Shown piece after piece: positions 15,190 to 63,730 of a DNA stretch of 64,000 nt. The notes beneath the pieces are model-generated. The model did no database searches, had not been told where the DNA came from, and was given only the letters and a program-made list of their open reading frames with translations. The translations under genes and the position numbers were made by a program. The DNA lies in contig JBLDXI010000036.1 of the NCBI GenBank assembly GCA_047495785.1, forward strand, positions 1,178,001 to 1,242,000. Reading direction: 5' to 3'. Positions within the stretch are counted from its first letter, which is position 1; the number at the start of each line of letters is the position of its first letter. The stretch is from Lepidodermella squamata (Eukaryota > Animalia > Gastrotricha).

Positions 15190-15535
15190 TTCACAGCCTA
15201 TTGAAATAATACCAATAGAGGTTTGAAATAATACCACCTCTTTGATCGCAAGGAGAAGCCGCGGAGGAAGCATTAGCATCGTCAGAAATCGATAATTAAA
15301 CGTCTGCGAGTACCGAGGTTGTAGTCTGGTTTGAGTTGAAATTCCTGGCGAGGACAGTCCGGCCTGAACCCCCATCGATTTTCAAACCATGTGTTGCCCC
15401 GTCAGGAGCGGATTCAATGACTGTTTTAGAAGCTGAGGCCGTGACGAAAAAGGCGAAAAAGGAAAGAAACTGCCGGTGCTGAACTTGATATTTTCGGCTG
15501 CCAGACTGATGGGATCTGTTGAGCTGTAATGATAG
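15190..15535 (-). pseudogene. Frameshifted fragment of an E-type second LamG domain exon
   Basis: STDPISLAAENIKFSTGSF / FFVTASASKTVIESAPDGATHGLKIDGGSGRTVLAR / FNYRFLT are spread over three frames and align to gene E ORF 47122-47859. Confidence 0.85.
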
Positions 15536-15988
15536 CAACAAATCAAGATGCTATTGAAATTCTCTTTAAAAACTTCCGGCAATCAGTCAACTTGATCAAT
15601 TGATCGGAATTCATCTGAATCGAATCATACGTTTCGGGCGACCAAGCGTGCCGGTATATTGCGAGTCGCGAGTCGCCGATCGCCGAGCGCCAATAGTTCC
15701 GTGGTGTTGCTCGCGTACGTGAATCCAGGGGTTCCGTTGTTTGGATCTGAGATACACTCGAAAATGAAAGAAATTGCGAGAGACAATGCGAAAATTTAAA
15801 ATGCTGTCGAATTCATCAGTAGCCTGGGTTTGAGGCTTTATTACGATTCAATGTGATATTTTATTGATTTAAAGTTGGCAGCTTTTCAATATATTAACTT
15901 CAAGTTAAGTTAAATGATTGAGATATCAATTAGAATAATTCATTAGGAGTCATTAGGATAAGGGCCGTTGATTATCGTTGTTCTTGTT

Positions 15989-18900
15989 TCAGCGCATGCC
16001 TGGAATAACGAACACGGCGCAGTTGATCTCGACAATGCGCAGCTGGTTCAAAGTGAGAACTTGGTTGAATATGTTCAGGCAGGTCAAACCTTCAAGATAC
16101 TGATCTTGCGGATTTGCCCAGGACCTGCAGGGAAGAGGATCAATTAGTTGCTCAATCAACTGCGTGTAATGATCAGAAACTTACCGCCCAATGATGAATT
16201 GGCCACTTTTCGTGATGGGCCGCTGGCCAGTCCCTATCAAGCCACCCTGGCCGTCGGCATGAAAGCTCAGCTTATCCCCGTCCGCATCGAGCGTGATTGC
16301 TAGAAACATCCAGTAATACTCCGGTGTAGTCGCGATGGACGTGAAATTCTGGCCGTATGGCCGAAAGCTGAAAGAGGTGGATGATTCTCCAACAACCTTG
16401 AGTCCCAGCGTCCCGCCGTCAGGGGCATATTCAAGTATCGGCCTGTTCTGCGTGAACGGACGCGTGGCGAAAAGTGCGATGGTGAAACTGCCACTGTCGA
16501 GCTTGACTTTATCGGCAGTCACCACAATAGGATCCGCCGATCTGTAAAAGAAGGTCGAGTTGTCTAATTCGAAAGGGCCCATAGAGATTGGCAGATGAGT
16601 GTTAGGAGGCGTGGCATCGGCCTTAGGATCGACAACATCTTTGAAATCGGACACCAGCGGCCAAATAGCTGTGTTCGAGGGCAGAAGGGTTGTCAAAGCT
16701 TCGGGCTGCCAAGTTTTACCGGCGTGAATTTGCAGACACTTCTTCCTCACAATCCACAATTGTTGGAACGATAGAGCTTGGTCGAAAATCGACACGCACG
16801 TTATTTGACCCGGAAGACTCAGGTTGCCGGCGAAATTTCTCCCAAATTTGATTTGATTGCTCGTAATGACTGAAACTTCATAGTAGTCATAATTCCAGTC
16901 GCAATGTACATACAATTGATTAGATGTACTATCGTAAGTGACGGCGATGAACACCCATCCTCCATTTAGCGACTTGCATGTGGCGTATTTCACCTTGGCC
17001 GCGTTGTCTGTAAACAAATTGTAGAAAATGAATACCTGTATGGTGTTCCCAAGTTAAAACAAATGGCCTTCAAAAAGTGAAAAGTGACGTTTGGCAAAAT
17101 TCGTGATTCGCAATTTTTACTCTAATAACTAATCATTGTAATGCTGAAAAAATCAGCTTCAAAGTTAAGTTTCAAAGTTAAGGCCATGGCGAAAATTTTG
17201 AAAACCTAAGAGTGGACGGATGCGCGTATGGGAGGGAATCCGGAAATTAAAAAACATCTAAGGGCTCTCTAACATTTAGGTAAACCCATGAAAAAGGAAG
17301 CTTTTTGGAACCCCACTTTTTTGAGATAGTTTTTAGCGGTCGGATTTTATCTAAAATATGATATCCCATCAAATTTACTTGCGTATGTCATCAAGTCGCT
17401 GATCGCAGGGTTGTAGTAGATTCGCAAGTGCGCCGCACTGTCGAAGAACTCGATGACTGGGTATGGCTTATCGGTAACTTCCACAAAGCCAGCATAAACA
17501 GATATTGAGAATGAACTATTCGGAACGATCTTGCTTTCTTCCACTTCAAAATAGCCGGCTGAATTTCCAACAGAAAGCGCTGCATTCGAGTAGTCGAACG
17601 GGCCGGTTACAAACGAGGGCGATGAGCCATCAAGGAAAGATGCTTCAACGTTATTGCCACTAACATCGTTGATGCCGTATTCCTGCGTCAGAGGGAAGAA
17701 AGCCAGGGCGATGGGTAACCCGAAAGGAGTAACTATTAGAAGACGTTTATTCGCACCAAAATGATAATTACTGATAGATTAAACTCACACTGGTTGCACT
17801 CTGTCAAGGTGGCGAACATGGTACCATTTGCTTGCGTCTGATTTGTTGTACAGTTTCGACATAATATGATTCTATAACTCGCAATTGGTGCTCACCAAAT
17901 CTTGAGGACAGTTTTCAGCCACAGAAACGCACATGGCCGCCATCAGAAGTTGATTCGTGCAGAGCTTGTACTGAAACTAAGAAAGGTATGGATTACGGAA
18001 TTTTCCTGGGAAGGGAACTGGAAATCTCTAAATCAATATCACTATAGAATCTAGAATCTTGAATTTCATTGCATGGTATTATTTCATCTCAAGGCTTTCT
18101 CAAGCCGCCCTAAACCCATCCTAAACACACACCCAGATTCGAGCTTTTTTGGCTATTTTCAAGCTTTTCAGACCACAACTTCGCAACTAACCATCCCGAA
18201 TAAACTCTTCCTACGAAATTGCAAATCTCAACTTGTCCCGTGCAGAGGTTTAGCAGGGGTACAAACTTGACTGATAGATTTGCTTGCCTGAAATATCCTG
18301 AATTATAAATTCAGATGCTTTTATCTTGTTTGAATTTTCTAATTATCTGATGTGAAATTAATAGATCTCACTTCATGATAACAAATACCTGAATGTCCGT
18401 CGTCTCCATCTTGCAGGCGTCATGATTGTTTTTGAAGGACGTTGAGTTGCCGTAGACTTTAACCTGGCAAACAGGAATTGCGTTACGTAGCTGCAGGCTG
18501 TAAACTATCATTAGCGTCATTGAAGAAGTGAGATTTAGGCCCATTTACAAGGAATTAATTTTAGATACCGCCAACGCTCAATCCAAACTACATTAGCTAT
18601 CTAGAGAGCGTCGCTGTCTCGCTTGTTAAGAACACCTTGACAAAATTTGCCCTCAGTAGACCTAGAGCTCACCTATCGATTTTAAAGAAGGGCAATGAAA
18701 ATCGATCGTGGGCAGGTCCTAATTATACAATACGATCAATTAAGCGTCAAACCCATACAACCTATCCCATAGTCAAATTTAGATCTAGCCTGGGTCTAAT
18801 TTGTAAGACTGCGTCAGAGCTTTGTAAGCCAGTTGCTTAAACACAGACGGTGAGATTGGACCATTTTGACTTCAAACCCATGAACCATGAATCCAATCAA

Positions 18901-20204
18901 CAACGCTAACGATATGACAAACTTACCCGGGTACCACTTGGAACAGTTCCATAGCATTGCTTGCCTTTGCTTGTGTCACATTGGACTGCTCTCTATTGAA
19001 GCATATACAAAAATAGCGAACATGGCATTCGAAAAGTTACCCCAGTTAAGCAATTTGCTTTGTTGCTGAACGTCGCAGGCGAAAATTCTCGCGTTTCAGA
19101 CCCAGCTTGGCAGCCGGTTGTCTCCAGGCGGCAATCGATGAAGCTCCCAGTGGACGCATTGAAGCACCTTACATGCGGCTTCTCGCTGTCTGGAACTTGC
19201 ACTGCAACAGGGCGTTAAAAGCTGGTTCATTAAATAATTATGAATTAACGAAAACCTACACGAGGTCCCTGAGATGCAGAGACTTAAACTAGCAAACGGG
19301 CTGCCACCTTCAAGCTACGGAAAAACACAGAAATTACGATCAGCTCGATGAGCATCGATTGTTTCTAACCCAGTTCTCAGGACACGTGTAGTTTAATGGA
19401 ACACAAGTTTTCACTACGCCATTGTCCGAGCATCGCTTGAAAGATTGATTCTGAACGTTAAATCAGTGAATTATTGCAACTATTCCAGATTATAGCGCCG
19501 GCTCATTAATTTACCTCAAATTTCGATTTCGCGGTATTGCAAGCGGCCAAGCTGTCCTTCAGCGCAGTATTTTTGAACCAATCAAGCTAAAAAATAAAAA
19601 ATACAATTAAAGTCAAATAGTAGCTAGATCCCCAATTTTACCTCGATTTCCCTGTCAGCAGCTGGTTCGCCGGTTAATTTGCAGTTTCCAAGGCCAGGAT
19701 TACAACGTGGTGTTAGGGCGCCGTATTTGTAGCACATTTTGGCATTCTGTTTTTGAGATGGATACAAGAAATTACCAGTAACAAGACGGAAATTGCTCAC
19801 CCCTGAACGGCATGATTTCAAATCTGGAAACAAGGGACCCCACTGGATTTTAGACAAATTATTTTACAATAAAATAAAAAAATGGAAAAATTATTTTTTT
19901 CAGGATTAAGATTTAAGAAATTAAATCATGTCAAAAGCTAACGTGAACAGCATCTTCATAGTTCTGAGTGATTTGAGAAAAAAATGTTCAAAATCCTTAA
20001 ATAGATTATCCTTCATGAAAATTAGATTATTTAAAATTATTATAAATAGAATACCTGATATTCGGTGATGGGATCACAGGTAGGGTTGTCATCGCGACAC
20101 GAAGCAAACGCGTTGTTGGTTGCCAAGAAGCATCGCTTGAACACCTGGCCCGAGGCCTGGCTGATACAATAGATCGAAATAACTGTTGAAATGAATGCTC
20201 TCAT
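15989..20204 (-). CDS. Gene A: secreted Cys-rich-repeat + two LamG/ConA-like domain protein, 14 exons, 747 aa
   Basis: Hand-spliced exons 20204-20055, 19842-19801, 19746-19642, 19586-19515, 19450-19370, 19314-19260, 19201-19041, 18992-18927, 18463-18389, 17970-17896, 17837-17789, 17732-17379, 17007-16185, 16124-15989 (2244 nt, all GT-AG, open frame). Signal peptide MRAFISTVISIYCISQASG. LamG motifs SFSIS, WVFIAVTYD, GQITCVSIFDQALS. Ends INCAVFVIPGMR*. Confidence 0.88.
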
Positions 20205-20666
20205 TGATTTATTATTTGAAAAAATAAATGACGTTAAAGAGTAAATAAATCTCAAATGAAAAATTGTTTTGTCTGGCTCGTGGCACGTGCGACCATTCAT
20301 TGTGCGAGAACATCACGTTATCCCCATTGAAAAGACAAAGACGCCAGAAAAACAACATCGAAACGGTTGAACCTGACCTGTTCAGCTGTGGACAAATGTG
20401 TTAAGTTCCGATTTGCACAGAGTCTATTCTTCATCACCATGCACCATGCTATGTGCCGAGCGCAAATCCCAAATACCTGAACGAATCACAAAGCAGCCGA
20501 ATAGTATCTAACCAACGACTAAGTTACGTAATCATCATCGGTAAATCGTGATTGAAAAGGACGGAAAAGGCTTCTGGGCGCATGAATTATCGGGATATTC
20601 CGCAGGTGAGATCTTTGGAAGGAAATACGAGTGAAAATTAGTTACTATATATACCTATAGTATATA

Positions 20667-21845
20667 TATGTCCCTTGTCTCCGCTACTCTTCATCGCAAC
20701 GTTCGATAAAATCTGCCGAAAATTGATGGACACCCCAGGTGGTTTCCCTATTAATACTGAACAATTTTTGAACCTGATTGCTTTCGCGGATGATGGAACT
20801 TTAATCGGTATGAGTCATGAAGAAATTAAATTATTATTGGATGTTTTCAATAAGGCATGTACGGAGCTAGGCTTGAAAATCAGCATTAGTAAAACACAAT
20901 ACATGGTGATCGGTGAGGATAGAAACTACCAACTTGAATTAGACGGCAAATTTTTGGAAAAAGTGACGTCTTTCAAATATTTAGGAAGCATCATCACTTC
21001 TGACGGGAAAATGGACGAGGAGATCAAGGCACGCATAGCGAAAGCTGGCGGCTGCTTTGGTGCCCTCAATAAACTTTTGTGTAATAGAAAACACGTGAGC
21101 TTAGCTACGAAATTGAAAGTCCTTAGATGCGTTGTTATTCCTACCGTCACTTATGCCTGCGAAACCTGGAACCTGACCACCCAACAAGAGCAAAGGTTAA
21201 ATGTCACCTTTATGCGATGGCTTAGAACAATTATGGGTCTGTTTAGGACAGATTATATTCCTAATGTTGATATTAGACTGATCTGCGACGTAATGGAATT
21301 GAGTAAATTGATTGAAAAATTTCGTCTGAAATATTTTGGCCATATAATTCGACAGGACGAATATGACCCTGAAAGTCTCACGAGTATTATGTATTATTGG
21401 AAAGCAGTCGACCCGAGTTGGTACTTGCCTCGCGGCAGGCCGCCAACCCGATGGTCTGACTGCCTCCGAAGAAGCCTTCTAAAAATCGGAATTTTTTATA
21501 TACATGAAAAACGTATCAGGGATCCAAATGAACCTAAAAAACGAGGGCGACCCCGTAAATCAACCTTATTGATGCGACGCATCGAAATTCACAAAATTGC
21601 GGATTTAGAATTGGCGGAAGTAACAGCTAGAGACCGGGGAGAATGGCAGCTACTATGTAACAGTATAGAAAATTATGAATTCATGGGAAAAAGCAGATTG
21701 TTCGCGACTGTTCCTGAAGCTGATCTCTCGTCGTCAGCCGTCCCCTAAACCCTCACGGGTAAGGCTTGTATATATATTACCATCACTTTTAGCCGAAGGT
21801 GGACGTAAAATAAAACATTTTCATTTGTTCATTTGTTCATTTGTT
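20667..21845 (+). mobile_element. 5'-truncated RTE-clade non-LTR retrotransposon (RT ORF 20675-21748)
   Basis: RT motifs LSPLLF, FADD, FKYLGS, YACETW, LKYFGHIIR, RGRPPTRWSD, ARDRGEW; 3' tail (CATTTGTT)3; 13-bp TSD CCTATAGTATATA (20654-20666, 21846-21858). Confidence 0.92.
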
Positions 21846-26660: not shown

Positions 26661-26702
26661 TGTTTTACTTGAAATAATAATAGCTCAATGGCAAATAGAA
26701 CT

Positions 26703-26750: not shown

Positions 26751-27200
26751 TCAATTTGATTCGAAAACATAATACGCAGTAGAAAAACAACATAAACTCA
26801 TTTAACCCGACCTGTTAAGCCATGAGAAATTGCTGGAAATTTCATTTCAGCCTTGAAAGTACGCCATAAATTACGCAAAAGTTATGAGAATGCAGTTTAA
26901 TGTACTAATATTATGTGAATACTGTCACCGTATGAGAAAATAATGGAACAGTCTATATCAGGCCAGCATTTTTTAGGCGACAGAGCTAACAACAGACAGA
27001 TTCATGATTCAATTTTTCGGGGTTATCAACGACTGGGAGTAAAAAATACTGAGATAAAACTCCGGTGTACCCACGCCGGGGGTACCGTATTTGCTCGTAT
27101 ATAAGGCTGACACTAATAAAAGGCGGACTCCCTATCGTCGGGGTAGCGGTTTAAAGTGCCAAGTGCCTTTTTCAAAATTTTCCAGGAGACGAAAATAAAT

Positions 27201-27952
27201 TATGCGTAATATTTTTTTTGCATCGCATTTTATCAATAACTTTTCAAACATGAGGAATGTTTTAAAATGGTTTTCGCCAGTCGATAGATCTAGTCTGCGG
27301 TAAACCTTCCTCAAATTTTCATTTGAATTGGGTGCGAGAGACAAAATTGGTGACGAAAATTCTGCCCGCGATTTTTATTGAAAATTTTCATTTTTGAAAA
27401 ATGGCATTTTACAGGATTTAAGGTTGGAAGACATCATCCTGTTGAAAGGCTTTATCGGAAATTTTTTTAGCAGGGAATTAGGTCAATAACGCGCTGTCAA
27501 CAAGGAAATTCGACTTAGCGGCCACAAAGAAGGTCTTATCCACCAACCGCGATCCGTAATGAATTTTCGGAATTTTGTGAATGATTTGTGCCAATTTTAT
27601 GAAGCCTTCAGTTTTGGATGGTTGTACAATGTTTTTTCAGGAATCGGTGACGTAGATCCATTACGGACCATCCTCTCAAAAAAACTTGAAGCCTCTGGCA
27701 AGAGAGACAATCAATTCAGACCTAATTCAAAACCTAATGCAAAAATAGCATTTTTCAAAAATGAGAATTTTCAATAAAAATCGCGGGCAGAATTTTCGTC
27801 ACCAATTTTGTCTCTCGCACCCAATTCAAATGAAAATTTGAGGAAGGTTTACCGCAGACTAGATCTATCGACTGGTGAAAACCATTTTAAAACATTCCTC
27901 ATGGTTGAAAAGTTATTGATAAAATGCGATGCAAAAAAAAATATTACGCATA
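27201..27952. repeat. Long inverted repeat/foldback element (~210-bp arms, ~330-bp spacer)
   Basis: 27201-27410 is the near-perfect reverse complement of 27742-27952; a diverged single arm occurs at ~57490-57605. Confidence 0.9.
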
Positions 27953-28386
27953 CTTTACATGTTTTCTCAAAATTGGCCCGGTAGTTTTTTGATACCTTCG
28001 AGTTGTAAGGGCTGTTTTACTCGCTGAACACGATGGCGGTGTTTTTTTCCTCAACAAATACCTGCAACTAGGTCATCCTATGGACATGGTACTTACATTA
28101 AAAAGAACAATGTTATTTCGCAATTAAAGTATAATCATCCACAATTTAAGTAAAATGTAATGAAATCAGCAGGATTTCGCCCAGTAGCGCGTTATTTTCA
28201 GAGGCTCAGCCATTGAGACTATTTTCGTGGCCTTAACGGACGCTTATTGCTCGAAGAAGTGGCCTTATTCGAAGGCTGAGTGTCAGTTGCTCTGCTTCGA
28301 GTTCGAAGAGATATGACTTCTTCTGGGATAGTCGACTAATTTTTACTTCTTTTGGCTTCTAAATCCCTTCATATTGCAATCGCAAT

Positions 28387-29560
28387 TTAACAGACAAAAG
28401 ATTGTAAGAAACTTTCGTGATTCATCTCCTCCTCCTTTTCCTCCTCGCCTTCTTCGCCTTCATCGTCATCAGGAATCGTTTCGAAAGGTTCAGCCTGTTT
28501 TTGAGAGTCATTTTCGTCGACGTAAGCTGCCATCTTCCCCAACTTCTCAGTCATTTGGGGACGCTTTTTAACGCTGCGCCAAATTGCATATGCCGATTTG
28601 AAGTTGAACAGTGCCACCGCAACGGCCGCCAAGCTGATGCGCATCAGCTGATCCAGATGGAAAGGAAGCAACATATTGCGGCGCTTGTTCTTGATCAAAT
28701 TCATCGTCGAGAAGCCGCGTTCGCAATCGCACGATGAAGCGCAAAAGGAGAGGTAGACCGCGGCGATGGTACGCATTGACTCAGGCATGTCGCCGCTGCC
28801 ATGCAGTCGCTTAAAAGTTGCCAGCAAAGACAATGCCTGATCGGCCTTGCCATTCTTTCCAGGGATATAGAAGGGTGGCAAAATCAAAGCCTGCTTCAAT
28901 CGCTGCCAATTCGCGAGAAAGTCGCGGCGTGATGATTGCAAAATTGTTGAACAATACTTCGCATGAATCTCCTCAATAGCGTCATTGCCAAATTGGTCTC
29001 TGAAAGTATGCAGAAAACGTCGACTACGCATTTTAAATTATAAAGATTATACCGGTCATCGGCGCTGAAGATGAGTTGAGGATCAGAAAAGCAAAGATTT
29101 AACAGAAATTCTTCATCGGGGAAGCGACGGTCAAGTTCTTCAGCTAACACTGAACACATCTTGCTGAAGCTAAGTCGAATTGAAATCTTGTCAGATTCCG
29201 CCAATGAATCGTCAACTTCACCGACTGCGTCTTCAAACCGCTTTTCCTGTGTCGAATTAAGGGCAACGAAATTGCGCACGCGCTTGACTTCGCATTGAGC
29301 CGAAGTAGGGTCCAGTTCCGATTTTTGTAGAAACCTGTTAAGCTCGCCCATTTCTTCCAACAGAGAGCCCAGGAGACGTAAGCGCAAATTGAATTTCACA
29401 TCTTTCATCTTTTTCGAAATGCCCTTCGCCAATTTGTCGTTTGACTTCGTTGCCCCTTCGTCAAAGTATTTAACCAAAAGGTTGTACTGGCGATAGCATC
29501 GCTTCTGGAGAGCCAACGAATAGCATGAATGCCCTTCACAGCAAAGTAATCTTCTTCCAA
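28387..29560 (-). mobile_element. 5'-truncated hAT transposase (ZNF862-like) with a 53-nt intron
   Basis: hAT C-terminal dimerisation motif ASSCDCERGFSTMNLIKNKRRNMLLPFHLDQLMRI, plus ELDRRFP. ORFs 28896-29516 and 28387-29031 join in frame via a GT..TTTCAG intron at 29052-29000. Confidence 0.88.
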
Positions 29561-30235
29561 TAGCTTGCCAAGCTCTTAACGAGTGGGGGCTTATATTTCG
29601 GTTATCACGGTAGAGTTTTCTTTGACGTACATGTTTTCGGTGTTGGTATTGTCAACCATGTTCATCCCTTAAAAAACTCTTGCGTATTGTTCATTTAAAT
29701 GAAGCCAAGCGAACCGACTCTAAAAGACCACATTGCCGCTGTTATGGTTATTATTTATTAACCGCTCTTATCCTAATTTACTCGACTTTGCATGGCGTTT
29801 TCGCCCGATCATAACGCCATGGTGACCCCTTACGTTTTATGCGCCAAGAATCGTTCCCTTACCAGCCACTCAGAGCGTGAAGCTGCGATGCGCGATTACA
29901 CCTATTTGTTGAGCTGTTATTGCAAACGAGACGCTATGTCTCGTCTCCTGAGGTCCTGAGGTGAGTCAAAATAATGTGAAATATTCGATAATTTTGGCTT
30001 ATCAGCATTCGACCGTGTCTTTACCGAATTGATTGTAACGTTGTGACGTAAAACCATGAAGATAAAACTGAAATGATAAGACAGGGGCAATGCATTATTT
30101 TATTTACTTAAATAAGTAGGCAGCCTTTCAATAAATTACTTTCGGATATAGTTTAGTTACTACAATCCAAATTATCATAAATCATTACGAGTCAGTAACG
30201 CCGATGGTCGGCCGATGGGTATCGTGTTACCAGGT

Positions 30236-34911: not shown

Positions 34912-35040
34912 ACAATCGGGCGATCCAGTGAGTCAAAGCATCTGCCCTGACCTGATGTGTACCGATTGAGAGTCGATGCCCATAGTTGGCTAGGTAGGAG
35001 GAGGAATCAGCGTGAATTAAACCTCGCAATCAATTTCGAT
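34912..35040 (+). pseudogene. Inverted, degenerate fragment of E-type exons 5-6
   Basis: GCGATCCAGTG..CCTGACCTG..TGTACCGAT..ATGCCCA.AGTTGGCT..CAG|CGTGAATTAAA matches gene E exons 5-6 (~51596-51445) but on the opposite strand. Confidence 0.7.
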
Positions 35041-45133: not shown

Positions 45134-46931
45134 TGATGTTTTATTTGAAAAAATAACTGCTTGAAATGGCGTGAAGGAGCTGAAAATTCCCGTCCGTTAT
45201 TGCTTGGCTCCGTGGCTCGTGCCTGATTTTGTTTTGAAAAACATCACGTGGAAATTTTATGTCGCCATTGAAAACATGAAACGTAGTAGAAAATCAACAT
45301 TCAACTTATTGACCCCGACCTGTCCAGACGTGGACAACTGGCTGAAATTATGATTTTCGATTTTGATGCAAAAATCCGCCGTGATAAAATACGGCCAGAT
45401 AAATGGCAAATGTGATAAAACATCATGATTTCCCTTTTTTTAATTCCTCATAATATTTCCCTCTCGAATGCCGATTAGGATTTCCAGGCCTTAATGACGG
45501 ATGGGCAAAATTTCAGATTTATTTTTTTTCTGACCAATCCACCATTAGGTGCACTCGGTCCTTGAGTCAATGGAAGGGGATATATCATAATCACATCATT
45601 AATTGGAAACAAGACACAATATAATCGTTTTATACATGGTTGTTTTCGGGATATTTTTACTGTTTTAATTAACATTATTTGACTCTTGTCCTGCCGTCCG
45701 GTCCTGCGTGCGCCACTCCTGCGCCTTGTATTCTCCTTAATTAGCCAATTAAAAGTAACCGATTTTCAGAGTGTTTTACAATAATTTCTTCGTATTCTGA
45801 GAATTGTACCAAGGTGAACGTGGATTTTAGGTACTTATATAGGTACATGAGTCGTTCAAAAACAAAATCGCTCTATCATACGCCTTTCAAGTGAATTGAT
45901 TGAACCTCAGAGTTGAATCGACGATAGAAGAATGAAAAATCCACCATCAGTGACTAAGGACTAAGCATTGTATTGTTTGGTATGAGAATTGTATGGAATT
46001 CGTAAGGCCCAGAGTCCGTACAATCGAATGACCCCGCTGGCTGACGCATTCAATTCAAAATGATTTACGGGCAAATACACAGAAAAAAATAGAAGCAGAA
46101 AATCAAGGTGAGCTCGGAAAATTCCAGGTAAAATCCTGGGGCTTCATATTTGTATTCCGCTGCTACCTGTATCATTTCATTAATTTTTGAGCTCAGCCCT
46201 CAACCTGATTTTCTAAAAATTCTGCAAAGAGAGGCCCTACTTGAGGCATGTTTCGAGAGTGACCTTTAGACCCATTGTTTGAGATACTGTAAACTGAGTG
46301 ATAGATCTTAAACAAGATTGATATAGTCAGAGCGATTTCCAACCATTAATTCTGTCTGACCAGAAATTCGTTTTTTTTCAATCGCTAAAAGTCTCAAAAT
46401 AGGCTTCAAAAAGTCGAAAAGGCCAAAAAACGTTAAAGCTGAATTTTGCTGACAATTCAAGCCATATTTCAGTTCTAAATTCAACCCCGGCTTGTCTCAG
46501 GAGCCAAATTACGGGAGGAAAAAAATTGATACAAAGGATAACAATTGCGATTACACATAGTAACATTAGTATTTTCGTTATATTTTTTAGAATTACGACA
46601 AAAAAGTAGATTTTTCGTAACGCTTGGGCTATGTGAAAATAGTATTCAAAGCCGTTCCAAGGACAAATTCAGCTGAAATTTCGATTTTCCAAAACTAAAT
46701 TCTGCGCGCAGCAGCTCTTTAGCATCATCGCTCCTGAATAGCATTCACCAACAAAAGTTCATAGCCGCGTACAATGGGACATCTATTGGTCCGGTAATTT
46801 ATTTATAATAATTAGCTGTCTGAGCTTTCATCTCATCCGCCTGAAAATGTCACCATAGAATTATCTCATTCACGAAGGTAAAAATAAAGATAGGCGAACG
46901 GCCCAAGAACTCGAAGGCATCAATAGGAGGA

Positions 46932-49900
46932 TTAGCGCATTTCAGGAATTGAGAAGGCAGCACAATTGATTTCAACGATTCGCAGCTGGTTCTGGGTCAG
47001 AACTTCATTGAACATTGTCATGCACCCAATGCTTCCAAAGTACGTCGATGACGTATCAGCCCATGCTCTGCAAATAAGGTAAAGTGTAACAACAATAGAA
47101 GCAGGGGGAAAATGTGATTAATTACCGCGCCAAGCTGAGTTGTCCGCTCCCAGTAACGGGTCGATTGGCGTTTGAAATAACATTACCTCTTCGATCGCAA
47201 AGAAATGTCATTGCGGTAGTGTTAGCGTTGTAAGTCAATGTCAGATAGCGCCAATTAAAATTCTGCTGGCAGGTGAGTGAAGTCAGGCCGGAGCTGAATA
47301 CCTTGGCGAGGAAAGTCCGACCTGAACTACCATCAATCCTCAAACCTTGTGTCGTCCCGTTTGGAGCGTATTCGATGATTGTTTTGGTAGAAGTCGAGAG
47401 CGTGGCGAAAAATGCGATGGTAAAACTGCCGGTGCTGAACTTGATCTTTTCGGCAGACAGACTGATGGGACCTGTTGAGTTGTAATAAAACGCCGTGTTC
47501 GCTAAGCCAAATGGCCCCGAAACCTGAGGAAGAGCCGTGTTAGGGGTCGTAAAATTAGCCCTAGGATCGACTAAATCATTCAAATCCGAAACCAACGGCC
47601 AACTGGCTATGGTGGACGGGAGTAGAGCGCTCAAGTTCTCAGGAGACCACGTTTTTCCAGCGTGGATTTGAAGGCACTTCTTCCGAACAATCCATAGCTG
47701 CTTCACCGTGAGGGCGTATTTGAAAACGGACAGGCAGGACAGTTGACCTGCCAAGCTGACTGAGTTATCGAAATTTCGTCCAACTTTCATTTTCGTGCTG
47801 GTAATTGCGGGAGCTGTGACGCTCAAAGTAGACGTTTGGCTGTCGCATACCGCTATCACTTGGTTCGAATTTCTGTTGTAGGAAGCAGCGATGAAGACCC
47901 ATGTTTGAATGGTGTTACCGACAGATAAACAGCCAAGTGCGATTATATTGTTGGAATTATCTGAGAAAGGCAGACAATATACGATGAAAGGTGAAAATGT
48001 CCTAGAATTAACTTTTTGAGAATGTTAGTATTTCATAATTGTCTAATTTAGAATTAAAAAAGTGTACCCCTAGGTCACATAGCCAAGTTGGAAATCTCTA
48101 AAAGAACCACAGGGGGACCCTTTGGTCTTTGGTCATACAATTTGGTCCCAAAAATACCCCATAATTCGAGGATCTTACTTCGCGGGCTGCGCAGTACCGA
48201 TATTCTGTAAAAAACAAGCCACCAAACCGGGCGGAGCAAGTTCCCATATTTGTAAATAAATAGACCCTGGCTACATCCAAATTTGCAAATGTGATAGATA
48301 GTATGAGGAAGACTCTACGTAGATCGTAACGTTAAAATTAGATTTATGCCTATTGATCCAGCCTATTAGACCGAATTAAGCCATTTTTGACCAAATTTCC
48401 ACCCAAGTTTAGATAAATTTTGATCCTTGCGAACTCTCACCTCTATATATGTTCAAGACGTTCGTATTCGGGTTGTAAGTAATGCGGAACAGGGCTGAAT
48501 TCTCGTAAAACACAACAACCGGATAGTAAATGTTGGCGATTGTTACAAAGCGGACGTAGAGAGATATGGTAAATGGCGTGGTGCTGAGGTCTAGCTTGCT
48601 GTTGGTCACGTCAAGATAACCAGCCGTTGAGTTGATAGTGAGCGAAGAGGCTTGAAAATCGAACGGGCCAGTATCGTAGACAGCATCTTGTATAGCACCG
48701 CTGATTTGATTTCCGCTGATATCATTCAAGCCGTAAGTCTGGGTGAGAGGGAGAAACATCAAGTCTAGGGGTAGTCCGAAAGCAGATTCTAAAATCAAGA
48801 GTTCAACATTAAGTTGAGCTTTGAATTGGATATTGGGAATTCGACAAACGTTGTTGGCAAATTGCCAAACTGCTATGAGGCGAATCGATTGACGATGTCT
48901 GAGTTCAAGATATGCGTACACATTGTAACTCATCGATTCGGAGCTTACCCAGTCTTGAGGACAGTTGCCTGCTATGCATTTAGCGGCCATCAGCAGCTGG
49001 TTAGTGCACAGGTTGTACTATTTGAAAAATAACAAAAAAGTATCATCAAATGGGTCATAAGTCATAAAAATGCTACCAAAACCAACTAAAATTCTCGCAC
49101 TGTTTTATTCGAATTTAATCGATCAGTTCAAAAGCGCGCGTGGGAAAATTCTACATCCATTTAGCAACATAAGGAATAATATTCCAAAATTTCTAAATAA
49201 AAAGCTTGTTACCGGCATAGCTGCTAAGCAGGCAGCGTAATTGTCGGAAAAATTGCTATTCGAATAAACGCCAGACTAGAAAGAAATCCTGGGTTAAAGA
49301 AATTCGCTTGAAGTATTAGTTACAAATGAACCGTGGGCAATCCTTGCGGGCAGGTTGGCGAATCTTGGCAAACTCCAGCTGAAGCACATTGATAGGCGGT
49401 CTAGAATAAAAGGGATGCGAAGCGTTTAGGCAACAATTTAAATTCATACCGACGACATGCAGGCGTTACCGGACGAAAAGCTGACGCCTCCAATCTGCAA
49501 AAATTGCCAAAAATATCAAGCTTACCACAGTCTTTTAAGCATCAACTAACATTAACCAGAGGATTCGGGCAAGATGGGCCAATGTAGCAGCCTTTGAATG
49601 CCGTAGCGTTATTGTAACAGTGCACATACTCGATAGCTTGTAAACAAGATTCAATAAATCAATCAAATCTCAACAAATCGTGCAGGAAAACTAACTTTTG
49701 CAAATAGCGAAGGAGTCGTAAACAACGCCATCTGAACTAGCGATCTGATAAATTAGGTTCACGAGATCTGGAATTATGACAATGGGTTGAATGCTCACAG
49801 TCGACGCTGGACAAGTCGTGTTGACGGGAACGCAAATGGACAGGAAATTAGTATTGGAATCGAAACATCTTTTATGTTTTCCCTTGAAGAACCAAGAAAA

Positions 49901-52151
49901 ATGAGGAGGCGCAAGTGATCAACCTTCTAACCTGGATCGAAGCTACACATGTTTGGAAATTCGTCGTAAATTGCGTCGAGTTCGATCCGATGCTTCCAAG
50001 CTGAAGATATGAAACAATTTGAAATTCCCCAATACTAGACCACAGAATTGATGGTTAAATTTAAAAAAAAATCAAATCCATATGATAATTTTTATTAGTT
50101 TAAATCATTTTACGTCGAATTTCTCGGTCCCGTTCGGGCATGAATCAATGCAGCTACCACCGGTTGTAGTATCGTAGCACATGTTGATTGCCTATATTGA
50201 AACGTAAGATTGAATTATAAATGTAGGAGATCCAAAATCTATTATACCCCAGCTTCACAGGATGATTTTGTCGGGAATATTGTCATACCAGGTGTCTGTA
50301 GAAAGTATATCGAAATTTGGAGATAAAAAAAGGAAATTGTGAAAATAATTACATCTGTTCCATCGCATGCGATTTGAGCAGGCTTGCATCCGGAAAATCT
50401 CAGCCCTCCTGAGCCGAAGCAGCGTCGATGTGGGAAGAAAGACTGTGGTGCTGCAAAAATGGACCAATTATTTCAAAAATTTCTGGTTCAGTTATTTTAA
50501 CAAACCTGATTCGCATTCGCCGAGATCTGTAAATGTAACGCCGGTCGAAAATTGGTTGGTACTACCAGCTGGGCAACTTTCGTTGCCATCAGTGGGTATG
50601 CACTTGACCAGAGAATAGTTTTGCGAGTTCAGGCAGAATTTGTGCGGTTTCTAAATATGCCGTGAAAAAATCTAAAACTCGCAATCAACAAATGAATTTA
50701 CCTTGTATATTGGGAGATAACTCAGGCATTGAGCATAATTTTCGCCAAAATCTTTCCCGCTGTTGAAAGTTGTAACCTGAAATGAGACATCGAGGCGATT
50801 CTTTAAATCTATCTTAATTTCCTACCAGACTCATTGGCGATCGACATATTCCTTGGCAAAGCAATGCTGATGCAGATTTGCATAGGGCTGCTGGCTGCAA
50901 TGGAAAGACGAAAATATATATCTCGAAGCGAGAATCTCAAGCAATTAACCCCAGCAATGCAATGTTTTTTGTCAATGTATGATCCACTGCTGAAAGCCTG
51001 GAAAAGAGAAATTATTTGGTAATTGAAAGTTGAAGATTGAAAAAAATATTTCTAAAGCTGAAATATTTCTTTATCTTTAGCTTTATCTCGAATATTTCAA
51101 AAATTAAACGCCTCTACAAAATTTGATATTAGATTCCCAATAATTATTTTGATGAATCATGCATTTTGGTACCGTCTCCAGTTGGCTTTTAGCCATGTTG
51201 TTTCGCCATGAAGTTATAGTGGTTAAAGGATAAGATTAGACTACTTCACCTGTGACTGCGTTGATTCATTGCATCCTGGGGTAGCCAACAGGCAGCCAGC
51301 AAATGATCGATCCGCTTTCGAGAAGCATCGAACGTGCGGCGAATAATCAGAACCTCTTATTGCAGCTATAATACAATTGAACGTGTAACGAAGTTAAAAA
51401 ATTAGACCGTCAACCTTGGATTTGCGATAAGCAGTCAGACAAAGTGATTATGAGATTTAATTCACGCTGAAATACATCAAAGTTTAAACGGAAATGGAGC
51501 AAAAGGTACCATTCTCACCCAGCCAACTGGGCATTGGCTGTCTATCGGTACACAGGTCAGGACTGAACCTTTGCCGCACTGGATCGCTGGGTTGACCTGC
51601 GCAGAAAAATATAAAACTTTCATAATTCAATTTAGAAATTCAAAAACAGACCATATAAGGCCGAATTTTGACGAGGCAGGCATCATAACGCGGCTTGAAT
51701 AACAAGCCCGTAAAATCCAAATGCTGTTGGGAAAACAGGATAATTTCTAGATTTTTATTGAAATGGAAAATTACCGCAATTTCGTCCTTTGAACAAGAAA
51801 CCAGTTTGGGGAGGCATCTCAAAGTGAACAGCTGCGGGTTGTAGCAGCTGTGGGCTGACTGAATCAGAAACCCTGTATGAAAACTTTATAAAAAATCATC
51901 TTACAAACTCACGCCCTGTTTACAACTAGTGGAATCAGGAAGCGCTGGGCCAAGCTATTCCCATTAAATTATAGGAAAGTATTAAGTATTTTATAGACTT
52001 TATACAAGAAGCTTACCTGGAATTCTTCGAATAGGTCACACTCAGGTTTGCAGTCGACGAATGCGTCGTTCCATCGTGAAAAGCATCGCTTGAAACAGCC
52101 AACTCCGCTAAAGGCGAGCGTGACTAGCAAGAAAATTTTTAAACAATTCAT
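46932..52151 (-). CDS. Gene E: long-form paralogue, 26 exons, ~1010 aa, 12 Cys modules + two LamG-like domains
   Basis: Signal peptide MNCLKIFLLVTLAFSGVGC; 23 small GT-AG exons between 52151 and ~48850 splice in frame; LamG exons ~48788-48440, ~47961-47126 and ~47067-46932; ends INCAAFSIPEMR*. Confidence 0.85.
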
Positions 52152-54046: not shown

Positions 54047-56122
54047 TTAACGCTTAGAACCATACGCATCGTCGTTGCACTCGTTCTCGGTTTCGTACCC
54101 GCCATTGTTGACTTGGAACTAAGTCGTTAAATAATGACATTAAACTCGAATTATCAAGAAGTCTCTCTCACCGAAAATTCCGGGCAGTTTTCCGCCAAGG
54201 TAAGGCATATATTAGCACCCGTGCCACTCGAGCAGAGCTTGTACTGAAATGTATAGAATATAGGCGATCAGATATTCTTTAAGGTATCGGTTTATCGAAT
54301 TTAAAGTGTATTCGAAACAAATACCTTGATAACCCTTATGTCCACCTTGCATGCGTGGTAATTATCTCCGAAAGAAGTTGAGTTGCCGTAGACTTTAACC
54401 TAACATGAAGAAATTACCTGACGAATCCAAAACATTGTTGAATGGCTTACCCGGGTACCACTCGGAACAATCCCATAGCACTTCGTGCCATTGCTTGTGA
54501 GACATTGGACGGCTCGCTATTTAAAACCAAACTTAATCAACAAATTCAATCGGAGATCGAAAGATAAAAAAATATTTAGGGTGAACTTTTTTTTATGACA
54601 AAACACCTTTCCCACTTATTTTTTCACTTAATTCGAGTTGGAAACTAGCGTACTAGTTTTCCGTTTTCAGTTTTCGGGGTTCTGAAAACGCAACCAATTG
54701 TTTTCGCTTCATAATAGTTATTGATGAAGTGCACGGGCCCTAAATATCGAACTTGAAAAAACTAACCCTGAACCCTAACCAAGCCCCAACCCTAACCCTA
54801 AACCTGACTCCCAAACCTAACCCATGAGCCAACTCCTAATGTAAAAAATTATCCTATTTATAAATTGTGTATGTCAGATGATTTTGCCTTACATTTATCA
54901 TAGACACTTCGTCCTTCGTCAAGAATATTTTTTAAATGGAAATTATGAATTCTGAAAATTTTAAATATTTGGATTTCAGCAAAAAGCTCCGATTATATAA
55001 TCGAAATGTTAATTTATTAGTGTTTACCCCTGTTAGGCAGTTTGCTCGGTTGGTGAACGTCGCAGGCGAAAATTCTGGCGTTTCAGCCCAAAAGTCACAG
55101 CCGGTTGACGCGAGGCGGCAATCGATGAAGCTCCCGTTATACTTCGTGAAGCACCTGACATGCGGCTTTTCACTGTCCGGAACTTTAACTGTTACCGTAC
55201 AGCATAAATAAGTAAATTCCATGGTTACAAAAATTGATTAAAAACTCACGTGAAGTTCCAGAGATGCAGAGGCTTAAATTAGCGTACGCGCTGCCACCTT
55301 CGAGCTATAACAAACAAATTATACGATCAGCTAGTAAAAACCCAGCTTCAAACCCAGTTCTCAGGGCAGGGGAAGGCGGTTGGGACACATGTCTTGACTA
55401 CGCCATTGTCCGTGCATCGCTTGAAAGATTGATTCTAAAATCAAAGGAGTCAAGTACAATAAATATTCCAGCGCTGATTAAATTACCGCAAATTTCGATT
55501 TCGCGTTATTGCAAGCGGCCAAGCTGTCTTTCAGCGTCGTATTTCTGAACCAATCCAGCTAAATAATGAAATAAAAATAAAATAACACAGTAGATAGCGC
55601 TGAATGTTTACCTCGATTTCTCTATCAGCAGCTGGTTCGCCAGTTAATTTGCAGTTTCCAAGGCCGGGATTGCAACGTGGTGTTAGGGCGCCGTATTTGT
55701 AGCACATTTTAGCATTCTGTGTTTGATACGGGTTAAAATAATGTAGGGAGCCAGACCAGAATTTCGATTTCTTACCCCTGATCGACACGATGCTAAATCC
55801 GGGAACAAGGGACCCCACTGTATTCAAATAAAAATGAATTATTCCAAAATCAATAAAAAAATGGAAAATTATTTGATCTCAAATAAATTAAATTTTCCGA
55901 TCGACTGCGAGTTTTGAAGAAATAAAATGAACTTGATTTAAAGCTGTGATTAAAATAATTCCTAAATAAAAATACCTGATACTCGGCAATAGGATCACAG
56001 GTATCGCGGCACGAAGTAAATGCGTTGTTGGTAACTTGGAAGCATCGCTTGAACACCTGGCCCGATGCCTGGCCAATGAACGCGAACGAAATAACGAGAA
56101 TTATCGAAATAAATCTTCTCAT
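54047..56122 (-). CDS. Gene F: A-type paralogue lacking both LamG domains, 11 exons, ~315 aa
   Basis: Exons 1-10 match gene A with an open frame; exon 11 reads FQVNNGGYETENECNDDAYGSKR* (TAA 54049-54047); AATAAA at 53934-53929. Confidence 0.85.
54762..54838 (+). repeat. Degenerate (CCCTAA)n telomere-like tract in gene F intron 7
   Basis: CTAACCCTGAACCCTAACCAAGCCCCAACCCTAACCCTAAACC... Confidence 0.7.
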
Positions 56123-57150: not shown

Positions 57151-58480
57151 TTTCTCGCAACATATTAGGAATGACTACGAGGGAATGACTCACAAAAACA
57201 ATATTGCAGAGTTCATAGATTATACTTTCCTATAGTTCCTTTTCCTATAGCGTACGAGGGACAGGGGGAAGGGGTCGGATGAAAATAGCTTAAATTAACA
57301 AATTTTAACAAATTTCATGCGATCGCTATGTTTGATGCTCTTTCATCATTTTTTCACACGCTCATCTAATTTCCAATGCAGCCTTTTCACAGAATGATGC
57401 CATTCAGCCTCAAATCATGGTTTTTCACAAAGTCGCGGACAGCATTTTCCCCATCAATTTCCTCTCCCGAACCCCATTCTTACGAATATTTGTGGAAATT
57501 TCACCCCAGACAAGATTTATCGACTGGCGAAAACCGCATTGAAAAATTCTCCAAGGTTACAAAGTTGTTCAGAAAACGCGAGGCAAAAACAATTTAGCGT
57601 ATACTTTTTTTTAGATTGGTTGGATTTTAAATTTTAACAGTTTTAGATTGGTTTTTCCGCTAAAATCTATGAACGTTGATAAGAAGCTTTTAGAATTTTC
57701 GAAAAATTCGTCCAATTCACACTCAGATTCACCGGGTAAAACAAGAGGAAACAACACTTGAATCGTGCAAATACTAACCTCTAATTATGTTCATGATGTT
57801 CGATGATGGGCTGTAATAAATTCGGAACAGAGCCGAGTTCTCGTAGAACTCAATTATCGGATAAAAAATGCTGGGGACTGTGGCGAAACGGACGTAGAGA
57901 GATATGGTAAATGACGAGACGGTGAGGTCGAGCTTGCTGTTGGCCACTTCCAAATAACCGGCCACTGGGTTGATAGTGAGCGCGGAGACTTGAAAATCGA
58001 ACGGGCCAGCATCGTAGGCAGCAGTTTGTATAGTACCACCGATTTGATTCCCGCTGATGTCATTCAGGCCGTAAGTCTGGGTGAGCGGGAGGAACGCCAA
58101 GTCGAGTGGAAGTCCAAAGTAAGTTTCTGAAAAAATATCAAGTATTTTTTTCGAGTCAGAATTTCGAAAAACTGACGCTGCTTGCAGGTCTCCAAATTGC
58201 TGTAAGGCGAATTGATCGATGGCGTCTGAGTTCGCGAGAAATATGAGAAAATAGTCACTCATCGACTCGGAGCTTACCCAATCTTGAGGGCAGTAGCCTG
58301 CGATGCATTTATTGAAACTTGAAATTATACACAAAATATGGAATAAAATTACAAAAAATTACATAAAACGAAAAACTTACCGGCATAGCAGTTAGGCATG
58401 CAGCGTAATTGTCGGAGAAATTGCCATTCGAGTATACGCCAGACTAGAAACAAAATATAGGTTGAAAAAATTCGCTTGAA

Positions 58481-59626: not shown

Positions 59627-62511
59627 AGTAAAACAAGACTCAATAAATCGATAAAGTCTTACGCATGAAAACTAACTTTTGCAAATATTGAAGGAGTCGT
59701 AAACAGCGCCATCCAAACTAGCGATCTGAAAAATTTGATCACGACAGTGGGAATTATGACAATGGGTTGAATACTCACAGTCGACGCTGGACAAATTGCG
59801 TTGACGGGGACGCAAATGGACAGGAAATTAGTATTGGAATCGAAACATCTTTTATGTTTTCCCTGGAAGAACAACGGAAAATGAAGAGACGCATTAGATA
59901 TTAGATTAATTTTCCCACCTGGATCGCAGCTACACATGCTTGGAAATTCGTCGCAAATTGCGTCGAGTTCGATCCGATACTGCCAAACTGAAAAATTTGA
60001 AAAAACGACCTTGAAATTCCAAAATATTACACCAAAATTTTAAAAATAAATTAAATGAAAATTAAATCCATCGGAATTTTATAATTTCTTGAAATCGTAT
60101 TACGTCAGTTTTGTTAGAGCAGGAATCAATGCAGCTGCCACCGGTTGTAGAATCGTAGCACATTTTGATTGCCTGTTGAAACAAATGATTGAGAAGCCTC
60201 AATTTTTGATACTCAAAGTCTAGTATACCCCAGTTTCACAAGATGATTTCGTCGAGAATATGGTCACACCAGATGTCTGTGTATTATAGATGTTAAAATA
60301 GGGGTAGGGAGCATTTAAAAAGAATACATCAGTTCCATTGCATGCGAGCTGAGCAGGCTTGCATTCGGAGAATGTCAGCCCTCCTGAGCCGAAGCAGCGC
60401 TGATGTGGGAAGAAGGACTGCGGAGCTGGTAAACAGTGAAATTTATGTTAAAGAGGTTGTTTTCAATTCCAGTTTAACAAACCTGATTGGCATTCGCCGA
60501 GGTTTGAGAACGTAACGCCAGTCGAAAATTGGTTGGTACTCCCAGCTGGGCAATTTTCGGTGCCATCAGTGGGTATACACTTGACCAGCGAATAGTTTGG
60601 CGAGTTCAGGCAGAATTGATGCGGTTTCTAAATCCAGTGGATGAAGCTAAAGAAATTCAATCAACTCATGGAATGTACCTTGTATATTGGGAGATAACTC
60701 AGGCATTGAGCATAATTTTCGCCGAAATCTTTTCCGCTGTTAAAAGTTGTAACCTGAAACGAGGAATTGAAGCGATTTGTTACTTCTCAATTTCCTATAC
60801 CAGGCTCATCGGAGATCGGCATATTCCCTGACAAAGAAATTCTGATGCAGACTTGCATAAGGCTGCAGGCTGTAATAGAAAGACGTGGATATTTTTCCAA
60901 AGTCTGAAATTTGCCACTGCAACCAACCCCAGCATTGCAACGTGTTTTGTCATTATAGGTTCCAGTGCTGATAGCCTGGAAAAGAAAATCAAAATTCCGG
61001 GTAGAAAAAAAGAAATATTACACAAAATCCAGTTACCCCAATATTTGAAGATTTGAATTTCATAACAAAATACTCAACCACCAACCTTGGTTTCCAATTT
61101 CTGGCAAATTATATATTCTAGCCGTCCTGTTTCGCTAAGAATTTAGAGCGAAGGTAAAGGATTTATCACCTGTGACTGGGTGGTAGCATTGCATCCAGGA
61201 GTAGCCAACAGGCAGCCAGCAAATGACCCATCCATTTTCGAGAAGCACCGAACGTGCGGCGAATAATCAGGAGCTTTCGAAGCTTCAATACAATCAAAAT
61301 TTAAAAAATCGAACAAATTGAACGAGAAACCTCTGATCCTAAATAAGCAGTCGGACAAGGTGATTATGGGGTATAATTCACGCTGAAATACATTACAGGC
61401 AAAATTGAATTGAGATAGACTGAAGAGTACCAAACTCACCCAGCCAGTTGGACATAGGCTTTCGATTGCAAAATACACAGCATTCAAAATGAAATGAAAA
61501 ATATCCCAAAACTAACCATATAAGGTCGAATTTGGACGAGGCAAGCTCCATATTGCGGCCTAAATTTCACACCCGTAAAATCCAAATGCTGTTGGGAATC
61601 AACATAATTTTTGAATTAATCATTCAAGTAAAAAATTACCGGAATTTCCTCCTTTGAACAAGAAACCAGTTTGGGGAGGCATTTCAAAGTGAACAGTTGT
61701 GGGTTGTAGCAGCTGTGGGCTGACTGAATCAAAGGCCCTTTGAAAATTTCTACTAACACCCTCATAATATCAACTCACGCCTTGTGTACAACTCGTGTAA
61801 TCAGGTAGCGCAGGGCCAAGCTATTTCCATTGATATGAAGCAAGTTGTATTGAATAGGCCAAGCTTACCTGAAATTCTTCGAATAAGTCAGTCAGATTTG
61901 CAGTCAACGAATGCGTCGTTCCATCTTGAAAAGCATCGCTTGAATAAACAATCAACGCCACTGAAAGCGAGCGTAACTAGAAAAAGGAATTCTAAAAAAT
62001 GCATAGTAATTTCTGCGGGCGAAAATTGTTTGAATGAATAGTTTTATAAATGTTGTTGATTTCACGTCTTTTTTTTAAACGTGGCGTTCCTTGGTCGCGT
62101 GCTGTGAAGAATAGCTGCTCTCATTTCCAACGGCACTGAACTTCTCGAACTCCAAGATAACTCGTCCTACCAGATTACAAATGATACAAAACGAACAAAA
62201 TAATTTTATTTGTAAACTTCAAATTTATTGCGCTATAGAAGGGCCAGCATCAGTTTGCGATTATCAGGGGCGTTTTTGAATGGAAATTCTCCACAGTTTT
62301 CTTCCTCCGCTCGTATTTGATTGAAATGAGGAACAATTCTGGGAAATTTAGAAAAAAGGAATTGTTCATCGCTCTTTGCCTTGCTTGTCAACTGAAGTTT
62401 TATTTTTATTTACCAATTTATCATTAATATCGAAAAAAAGAATTTCGTTGGATAATCACGAGATAAGGTTGAGCACTTCTATTTTACATTTTATGCTAGA
62501 TTAAGGTAGTT

Positions 62512-63730
62512 CTAACGCATGCCAGGAATCGAGAAAGAAGCGCAGTTGATTTCCACCATTCGCAGCTGTTGATGACTCAGCTCTCCCTTGAATAAGTTCA
62601 GGCAGGCAATACTCCCCATGAGTGGCTCAGCCTGATTCGCCCAAGACCTGGAATAAAACAATTTAAGCCTAATTTCTTAAAATTCATGGAAATTTGGAGG
62701 ACTAACCGTGCCAAACTGAGCGCTCCGCTGTTTGTCACAGGTCTCACTTGGCTCGCAATATCGCTGCCACTTCTGTCGCAGTGAACACTTAGTTTGCTGC
62801 TCGATGAGGAATAATACAGAGTCACATAGCGCCACTGGAAGGTCAGAGGACACGTGATATCCGAAACATTGCCACCAAATGCCCTGAGACGGATAATTTG
62901 GTTTGCATGAGCCGAGATTTTCAGACCTAGCGTTGTTCCATCAGGAGCGAATTCAAGAAGCGGCCTATCTGGTTGCGTTGAAAGCGTTGCGAGAAAGGCG
63001 ACAGTGAAACTGCCGCTGTTAAGCTTGATCTTATCATCAGAAATTACCAGTGCATCGCTCGAGTTGAAATAGAACGCTGTGTTCGAGATACCATACGGCC
63101 CAGGGACCGATAACAGAGGCGAGCTTGGGACGGAAAAATTAACAGCCGGATCGACGCGGTCATTCAAATCAGAAACCAACGGCCAAATAGCTACGTTCGA
63201 TGCAAGTAGAGTCTTCAAAGATTCTGGAGACCAAGTTTTGCCCGAGTGCATTTGCAAGCACTTTTTTCCACTTTTCCACTTTTCCACAACTGTTGAACAG
63301 ATAGGGCATGTTTGTAAATCGATAGGCACGATACGCGAGCACTAAATGTAACAGGGCTCATGGCATTGTTGCCAAATGACATGCTATTGCTGGTAACAGG
63401 CGGCGACGAGACATTCACCGTATAAATTGCGCTGTCACAAACTGCTGTCAGCTGATTCAGAGTTTTGTCTTATCATACGGCGAGAAAGACCCAAGATAAA
63501 GCATCGGTCGTCGGTCGAGCCAAAAGCTGGACAACTGAGAGTAGATGATTGAGTAGATCGTCTGAAAAAGAGAATTTGCCATCGCCGGAACCAAAGTCTG
63601 GAAAAGACGTAACCATGAAAATCTTGCATCTTGTTTGAAGAGTTGGTACTCGGTTCGTAATGAATGCGAAACAGCGCTTTAGCCCCATAAAACACAATAA
63701 CTGGAGAATTTTTGAAAGGACTGACAAAAA
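62512..63730 (-). pseudogene. Gene H: 3' LamG exons of a further, diverged and disabled paralogue
   Basis: LamG ORF 62598-63329 plus a last exon ending INCASFSIPGMR*. In-frame TGA-TAA after WVFLAV (63475-63470) and an extra TTTTCCAC unit (~63264-63287) shifting the frame. Confidence 0.85.

Follow-up and report, generated by a model that had tools for sequence, protein, structure and literature searches.

A tandem array of genes for secreted proteins with cysteine-module stalks and LamG heads in the gastrotrich Lepidodermella squamata, a candidate recognition family

The stretch of DNA analysed here in full, 64,000 nucleotides (nt) of contig JBLDXI010000036.1 from the gastrotrich Lepidodermella squamata (hereafter the window), carries a tandem array of eight paralogous genes, A to H, all on the minus strand, together with two gene fragments (Table 1). 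The typical product would be secreted and consists of a stalk of small four-cysteine modules followed by a head of two LamG domains. The stalk is under purifying selection, whereas both heads diverge faster and carry a signal of positive selection that holds after checks, if modestly. Judged from their sequences, the proteins are most likely a diversified repertoire of soluble binding molecules, and I put the chances at about even that they form a lineage-specific, secreted, lectin-like recognition family in which, as in FREPs, a stalk presents a variable lectin head.

Comparison of the window with itself and a listing of its open frames revealed repeated coding blocks between 15.2 and 63.7 kb. 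I assembled gene A by hand on GT-AG sites and mapped the other copies with a purpose-written spliced aligner; database searches and fold predictions used single exons, and the joined models served for frame checks, alignment and rate estimates only. An earlier interpretation made from the letters alone (the sequence-only reading) had proposed a same-strand tandem array of at least eight paralogues plus two fragments, with A, B, D and E intact and full-length, F intact and short, and C, G and H disabled, and the spliced models confirm both the array and this tally. All five intact copies have open frames and GT-AG borders at every intron, most introns measuring 47-66 nt. It had also given each copy two LamG domains, which is correct for A to E but not for F, which has none, nor for G and H, which are incomplete. 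As it had stated, no transmembrane segment stands out: beyond the signal peptide, hydropathy over 19 residues peaks at no more than 1.6 in the intact copies.

The copies differ in instructive ways. Gene E represents a second subfamily, about 44% identical to A across the alignable parts. Exon 9 of gene C has 62 nt versus 66 nt in B and D, which shifts the frame, and C is either a recent pseudogene or a null allele. At the 3' end of gene F (54047-54118, minus strand) the donor after module 6 is AT, not GT, and a short read-through tail leads to a stop, with AATAAA 112 nt further on; I found no LamG exons downstream of that stop. Gene G breaks off after its first LamG exon, beside a repeat, and the 5' part of gene H is either missing or outside the window.

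The modules follow the hydrophobic signal peptide in ordered threes. Each comprises 39-59 amino acids (aa) with the pattern C-x(5-10)-C-x(3-8)-C-x(15-28)-C. Modules of E that stand three apart score higher against each other (mean 31.5 vs 18.8, p=0.01), and in both A and E every third module is closed by a phase-1 intron. Thus, the unit of duplication is a triad with 12 cysteines, present twice in A-D and F and four times in E and G. Module 5 lacks its third cysteine in A, B, C and F, and in D it lacks the first as well; this additional loss in D suggests that the module disulfides run C1-C3 and C2-C4. With signal-peptide cleavage sites placed by eye, the mature cysteine counts are odd in all intact copies (29, 29, 29, 23 and 57), and therefore inter-chain disulfides, giving disulfide-linked oligomers, are plausible. 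Within module 9 of E (49696-49882, minus strand) lies a 54-nt intron that is in frame and stop-free, such that its retention would add 18 residues and leave the protein unbroken.

A complete head spans two exons and has a conserved cysteine pair at the end of each domain. Five of the six large LamG exons matched Pfam Laminin_G_3 (PF13385) with 28.6-50.6 bits against a gathering cut-off of 27.6, only that of H giving no match, and ESM Atlas features lay at 0.97-0.98 to LamG clusters. The sequence-only reading had spoken of LamG/pentraxin-fold domains, but the heads are not pentraxins: the Pentaxin profile (PF00354) reaches 13-13.4 bits against a cut-off of 25, and the signature HxCxS/TWxS is absent, the equivalent strands of A reading WVFIAVTY and WMFLAITL. 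Pentraxins (CRP, SAP and the long pentraxins) are secreted, oligomeric pattern-recognition proteins of several animals with a ConA-like jelly-roll head; the array proteins differ in having two tandem heads on a cysteine stalk. The heads also share their domain family with Laminin_G_3 proteins of bacteria and invertebrates and with the LNS domains of neurexin and laminin.

Close relatives of the family were not found. An exon-wise search of 1.84 billion representatives with the large LamG exon returned 19 weak LamG matches (best E 6e-10, 30% identity), none of which shares the combination of stalk and double LamG. The LamG matches are 24-31% identical, and those with identifying features are bacterial (type IX secretion system tails, Magnetoglobus); these low identities and the many introns of the genes lend no support to a bacterial origin of the head by horizontal transfer. 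Against 5.8 billion proteins the large exon, searched singly and as an alignment, matched nothing within the visible range of 0.55-1.75 times the query length, PDB sequences gave it only chance matches, and the JGI metagenomes contained no match for module or head. I found no paper describing the family. The architecture and these protein and metagenome searches, which yielded no close homologue, support the view of the sequence-only reading that the family is secreted, lineage-restricted and uncharacterised and that its architecture belongs to no named family.

Selection was analysed among A-D, that is on four sequences, with my own implementation of the codon site models M1a and M2a. Mean identity among these genes is 84% and 76% in the two triads and 89% in the linker, but 61% in LamG1 and 67% in LamG2; the corresponding ratios of nonsynonymous to synonymous substitution (dN/dS) are 0.19 and 0.33, 0.16, 0.42 and 0.43. 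The stalk has no positively selected class of sites (M1a vs M2a, p=0.92), whereas LamG1 has one (p=0.02), as does LamG2 (p=0.002), where it takes in 16% of sites at a dN/dS of 2.7. Mosaic histories and gaps are able to inflate tests of this kind. I therefore dropped the codons next to gaps from the heads, which left p at 0.02-0.04, and simulated 60 neutral mosaics, of which none exceeded a 2dL (twice the log-likelihood difference) of 4.5, the observed values being 6.4-12.2. Most of the variable, positively selected sites lie in the large exon of A, and many of the LamG2 candidates fall in three loops (611-615, about 660 and 710-713 of A), one that follows the FTI strand, one that precedes the W strand and one that leads into the last strands. 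These loops presumably meet at one rim of the fold, which I take to be the counterpart of the calcium- and ligand-binding surface of neurexin LNS domains. In neurexins, the ligand-binding surface of LNS domains is hyper-variable (PMC3084293). Faster divergence of the heads, together with this signal of positive selection, fits recognition.

The genes have also exchanged sequence. The best tree of the stalk differs from that of LamG1 and informative sites are clustered (permutation p<0.0001); A-D are therefore mosaics. C and D are 94% identical over 365 nt around exon 1 (33468-33829 and 44977-45339), including about 200 nt upstream, far above their level elsewhere, which is likely the result of a recent gene conversion that included the promoter. 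Intact, broken and fragment copies and mosaics together bear out birth-and-death evolution, as the sequence-only reading had suggested.

Two public read runs, dated 2024 and 2015, contain the gene A region and were mapped onto positions 15000-20500. Run X1 (2015) is RNA by guess; run X2 behaves as DNA. In X1, depth lies over exons and is zero in the long introns of the gene A region, and its joints imply introns of 55, 64, 58, 48 and 463 nt, which are exactly introns 3, 4, 6, 7 and 8 of the A model. Most X1 contigs derive from paralogues, although 41 are at least 99% alike, and one of the X1 contigs equals the last exon and 3' untranslated region of A without mismatch, but its strand switches at the joint, making it weak evidence alone. 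The array genes are thus spliced and transcribed, and the transcripts sought as a check on the gene models exist. Contigs of X2 that match exactly span gene A, and the copies of the array are only 44-78% identical in pairwise comparison; the array is therefore not an assembly echo, and an artefact of this kind was rejected. Summed X2 depth at 85% likeness, which is not a copy number, is about 55 over introns, 180-370 over LamG exons and up to 2460 over stalk exons; it suggests that other parts of the genome contain many relatives, with stalks more similar to each other than the heads are. This agrees with the conserved stalk and variable head seen in dN/dS.

Could the array be a mostly neutral expansion, in which a dispensable gene was duplicated in tandem within transposon-rich DNA and its heads drift under relaxed constraint? 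Three of the eight copies are dead, insertions of long interspersed nuclear elements (LINEs), hAT elements and miniature inverted-repeat transposable elements (MITEs) are interspersed, and mean head dN/dS is below 1, all of which such an expansion would produce. It does not explain purifying selection on the stalk, the 10-25 splice junctions conserved per gene, the transcripts, or a class of head sites with dN/dS above 1, and I regard it as very improbable.

The identity of the stalk module bears on what the proteins do. Modules predicted from single exons of A and E show the same order of elements (Table 1). In three structure libraries the best matches of A module 4 are MbtH-like proteins (template modelling (TM) score 0.56-0.62, Z up to 4.7), with the L9 N-domain and BRK domains ranking below them, but the MbtH-like matches, at Z 2.4-4.7, fall short of what the tool regards as confident, and those of E module 6 are weaker (Z 3 or less). 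The predicted module would share a hairpin, a third strand and a helix with MbtH-like or L9 N-domain-like mini-folds; MbtH-like proteins, however, are cytosolic bacterial chaperones without the module's disulfide pattern. Homology was rejected: compared with 11 YbdZ sequences of enterobacteria, hhalign aligned 6-9 columns at a probability of 0.1-1.9%, and no profile homology to the MbtH sequence type, with its three conserved tryptophans and SLWP motif, was found. The predicted model thus appears to share with MbtH a common small topology, a matter of shape only.

Nor did other known domains account for the module. Pfam and PDB sequences held no match (chance matches only in PDB), and the ESM Atlas no usable one. 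A search of proteins with the module alignment likewise returned nothing, only proteins of 29-93 aa being visible to it and no length-unlimited search of full-length proteins having been made with the stalk. Kazal domains were rejected for want of the six-cysteine pattern, of a Pfam match and of any place among the fold-search matches; CBM14, because each module has four cysteines instead of six and single-exon modules gave no CBM14 match; and immunoglobulin domains, since the N-terminal part consists of four-cysteine modules modelled as hairpin, strand and helix, and gave no immunoglobulin match. Within the scope of protein searches limited by length, I regard the module as an extracellular disulfide domain that has not been described before.

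Small disulfide-rich repeats often work as protease inhibitors or as prey-directed or defensive peptides, F retains modules only, and by eye the last helix motif resembles Kunitz or Kazal. The stalk might then be the active part and the LamG domains a targeting or carrier head. The Kunitz resemblance does not survive comparison: the module has four cysteines and not six, its structural matches are negligible (TM 0.27 to the bikunin Kunitz domain, Z 2.1 to an APPI variant), and neither Pfam nor PDB sequences offer a match. Furthermore, the stalk is conserved without positive selection, unlike most toxin or inhibitor repeats. An active stalk is thus quite improbable.

If the proteins are instead recognition molecules, their parts could work together as follows. 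The conserved stalk, a chain of 6 or 12 disulfide-bonded beads with the three-module unit as its building block, would be a protease-resistant spacer, and the single spare cysteine would join chains into dimers or oligomers. The targets of the heads would be diverse glycans or surface proteins carried by microbes or food particles, putatively in the gut, mucus or body fluid or on body surfaces, and the oligomers might agglutinate, trap or sort such microbes or particles. F would be a headless stalk still able to enter oligomers. Several points weigh against this interpretation. Membership in PF13385 is no proof of sugar binding, the selection test is modest, based as it is on four sequences with a mosaic history and on code of my own, and the rim position of the variable sites comes from knowledge of the fold and not from a model. 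In addition, the C1-C3/C2-C4 pairing depends on the single event in D module 5, and the by-eye placement of the cleavage site decides the cysteine parity of E.

The closest parallel in manner of working is provided by the VIgL lectins of gastropods (FREPs, CREPs and GREPs), a secreted, diversified multigene set with N-terminal stalk-like domains and a C-terminal recognition head (PMC5433772). The array family is likewise secreted, diversified and multigene. The parts are different: in VIgL lectins, one or two immunoglobulin domains make up the stalk and a fibrinogen, C-type lectin or galectin domain the head, whereas the array proteins have 6-12 small four-cysteine modules in place of immunoglobulin superfamily domains, and two PF13385 LamG domains as heads.

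Mollusc Pif/BMSP proteins, which resemble the array proteins in being secreted and in combining small cysteine domains with a laminin G-type domain, raise another possibility, namely a structural or adhesive matrix. The proteins could belong to the cuticle, the scales, the egg shell or the glue of the adhesive tubes, where the cysteine beads would act as cross-links and the LamG heads would attach to matrix glycans or to the substrate, as LamG domains do in Pif-type shell proteins. Secretion, an abundance of N-glycosylation sequons (4-14), the spare cysteine, the many copies and the headless F are compatible with such a matrix, papers on shell matrix proteins treat LamG alongside chitin-binding domains, and varied substrates could likewise drive divergence of the heads. 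Pif/BMSP also contain a vWA domain and six-cysteine CBM14, whereas the array models have no room for vWA and four cysteines per module, and they include no low-complexity, Lys/Tyr-rich, mucin-like, vWF or chitin-binding part. Frequent pseudogenisation and positive selection focused on the heads fit a changing partner better than a matrix made by the animal itself. A matrix role seems to me possible but rather unlikely.

LNS/LamG domains often bind proteins (PMC3084293), and gamete proteins show positive selection, so that ligands for the animal's own cells (neural wiring or soluble signalling partners) or gamete-recognition proteins also come into question. High gene turnover would be unusual in core signalling. 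In L. squamata, recorded as a parthenogen (PMC12862867), gamete proteins lack what usually drives them to diverge, and gamete recognition is unlikely; together these roles are very improbable. The sequence-only reading had included gametes among the targets of a lectin-like recognition system. That part is unlikely, while the system itself stands as a reading, the family being secreted, diversified, transcribed and faster-evolving in its heads.

A further-reaching version of lectin-like recognition is tentative and somewhat doubtful as a whole: a gastrotrich-specific combinatorial system in which the 12-cysteine triad is a universal oligomerising stalk, shufflable through phase-1 introns, and positively selected heads are exchanged by gene conversion, an independent counterpart of FREPs in a phylum without described immune molecules. 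Lectins, immune effectors and adhesive proteins of gastrotrichs are the subject of no paper that I found, and the family offers the first testable candidates for recognition, immune or adhesive roles in gastrotrichs. A stalk with a variable head, and tandem birth and death, are familiar themes among invertebrates, which this finding extends; new are the stalk module, held by neither Pfam, PDB nor the ESM Atlas, and its combination with LamG heads.

Table 1. Genes, fragments and single-exon features of the array (positions in the window; pLDDT, predicted local distance difference test)
Feature	Position	Strand	Structure	State or remark
Gene A	20204-15989	-	14 exons, 747 aa; signal peptide, 6 four-Cys modules (2 triads), LamG1, LamG2	intact
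Gene B	26660-22779	-	14 exons, 747 aa; layout as A	intact; 70% identical to A
Gene C	33624-30236	-	14 exons; layout as A	frameshift in exon 9 near 32352, rest open
Gene D	45133-35577	-	14 exons, 744 aa	intact; long introns
Gene E	52151-46932	-	26 exons, 1011 aa, 58 Cys; signal peptide, 12 modules (4 triads), LamG1, LamG2	intact
Gene F	56122-54047	-	11 exons, 315 aa; signal peptide, 6 modules; without LamG	intact
Gene G	62004-57779	-	E-like, 78% identical to E	pseudogene; exon-1 frameshift, exons 5 and 22 damaged
Gene H	63713-62512	-	LamG-only remnant: divergent LamG1 half, LamG2	stops or frameshifts
E-like LamG2 fragment	15221-15534	-		carries frameshifts
Fragment of E-type stalk exons 4-5	34863-34995	+		inverted
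Module 4 of A	19041-19199	-	single exon; predicted beta-hairpin, third strand, C-terminal helix	pLDDT 88.7
Module 6 of E	50507-50650	-	single exon; order of elements as in A module 4	pLDDT 72.7
Large exon of A	16185-17007	-	second half of LamG1, most of LamG2

Mobile elements lie within and between the genes. A LINE-type reverse transcriptase fragment (Pfam RVT_1; 20642-21745, plus strand) separates A from B and lies about 440 nt ahead of the A start codon, and intron 9 of D contains an antisense LINE-type reverse transcriptase open reading frame (38197-39546, plus strand; 449 codons open) that begins about 25 nt from the splice acceptor, leaving the D frame unaffected. At 28387-29651 (minus strand) and 27196-27957, a broken hAT transposase with a weak Dimer_Tnp_hAT match lies beside a MITE-like element whose 216-bp inverted arms are 97% identical; a related copy (57429-57612) is found at the breakpoint of G.

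Upstream of the start codons, A, B, C, D and F have in common the motif CACGAGCCAC.(A/G)GCCA.GCAA, 60-110 nt before the ATG, and an ACGTGA box occurs upstream of C, D, E, F and G. In B, C and D a kB-like GGGAATTTTC precedes the ATG by about 50 nt; it was not counted, as the copies are homologous and the window holds 8 versus 5 expected (11/100 shuffles, not significant). Outside the array, an unrelated gene at about 4300-9100 (plus strand) has GC-rich exons, one of which opens with a sushi-like C-G-P-V-P...C...W..P-x-C; its frames are apparently interrupted and it has no Pfam match. Dispersed repeats upstream of the array pair 9607-9964 with 10644-10985 (71% over 374 nt), and 3491-3720 with 7628-7857 (92% over 230 nt), the latter with a third copy at 41355.

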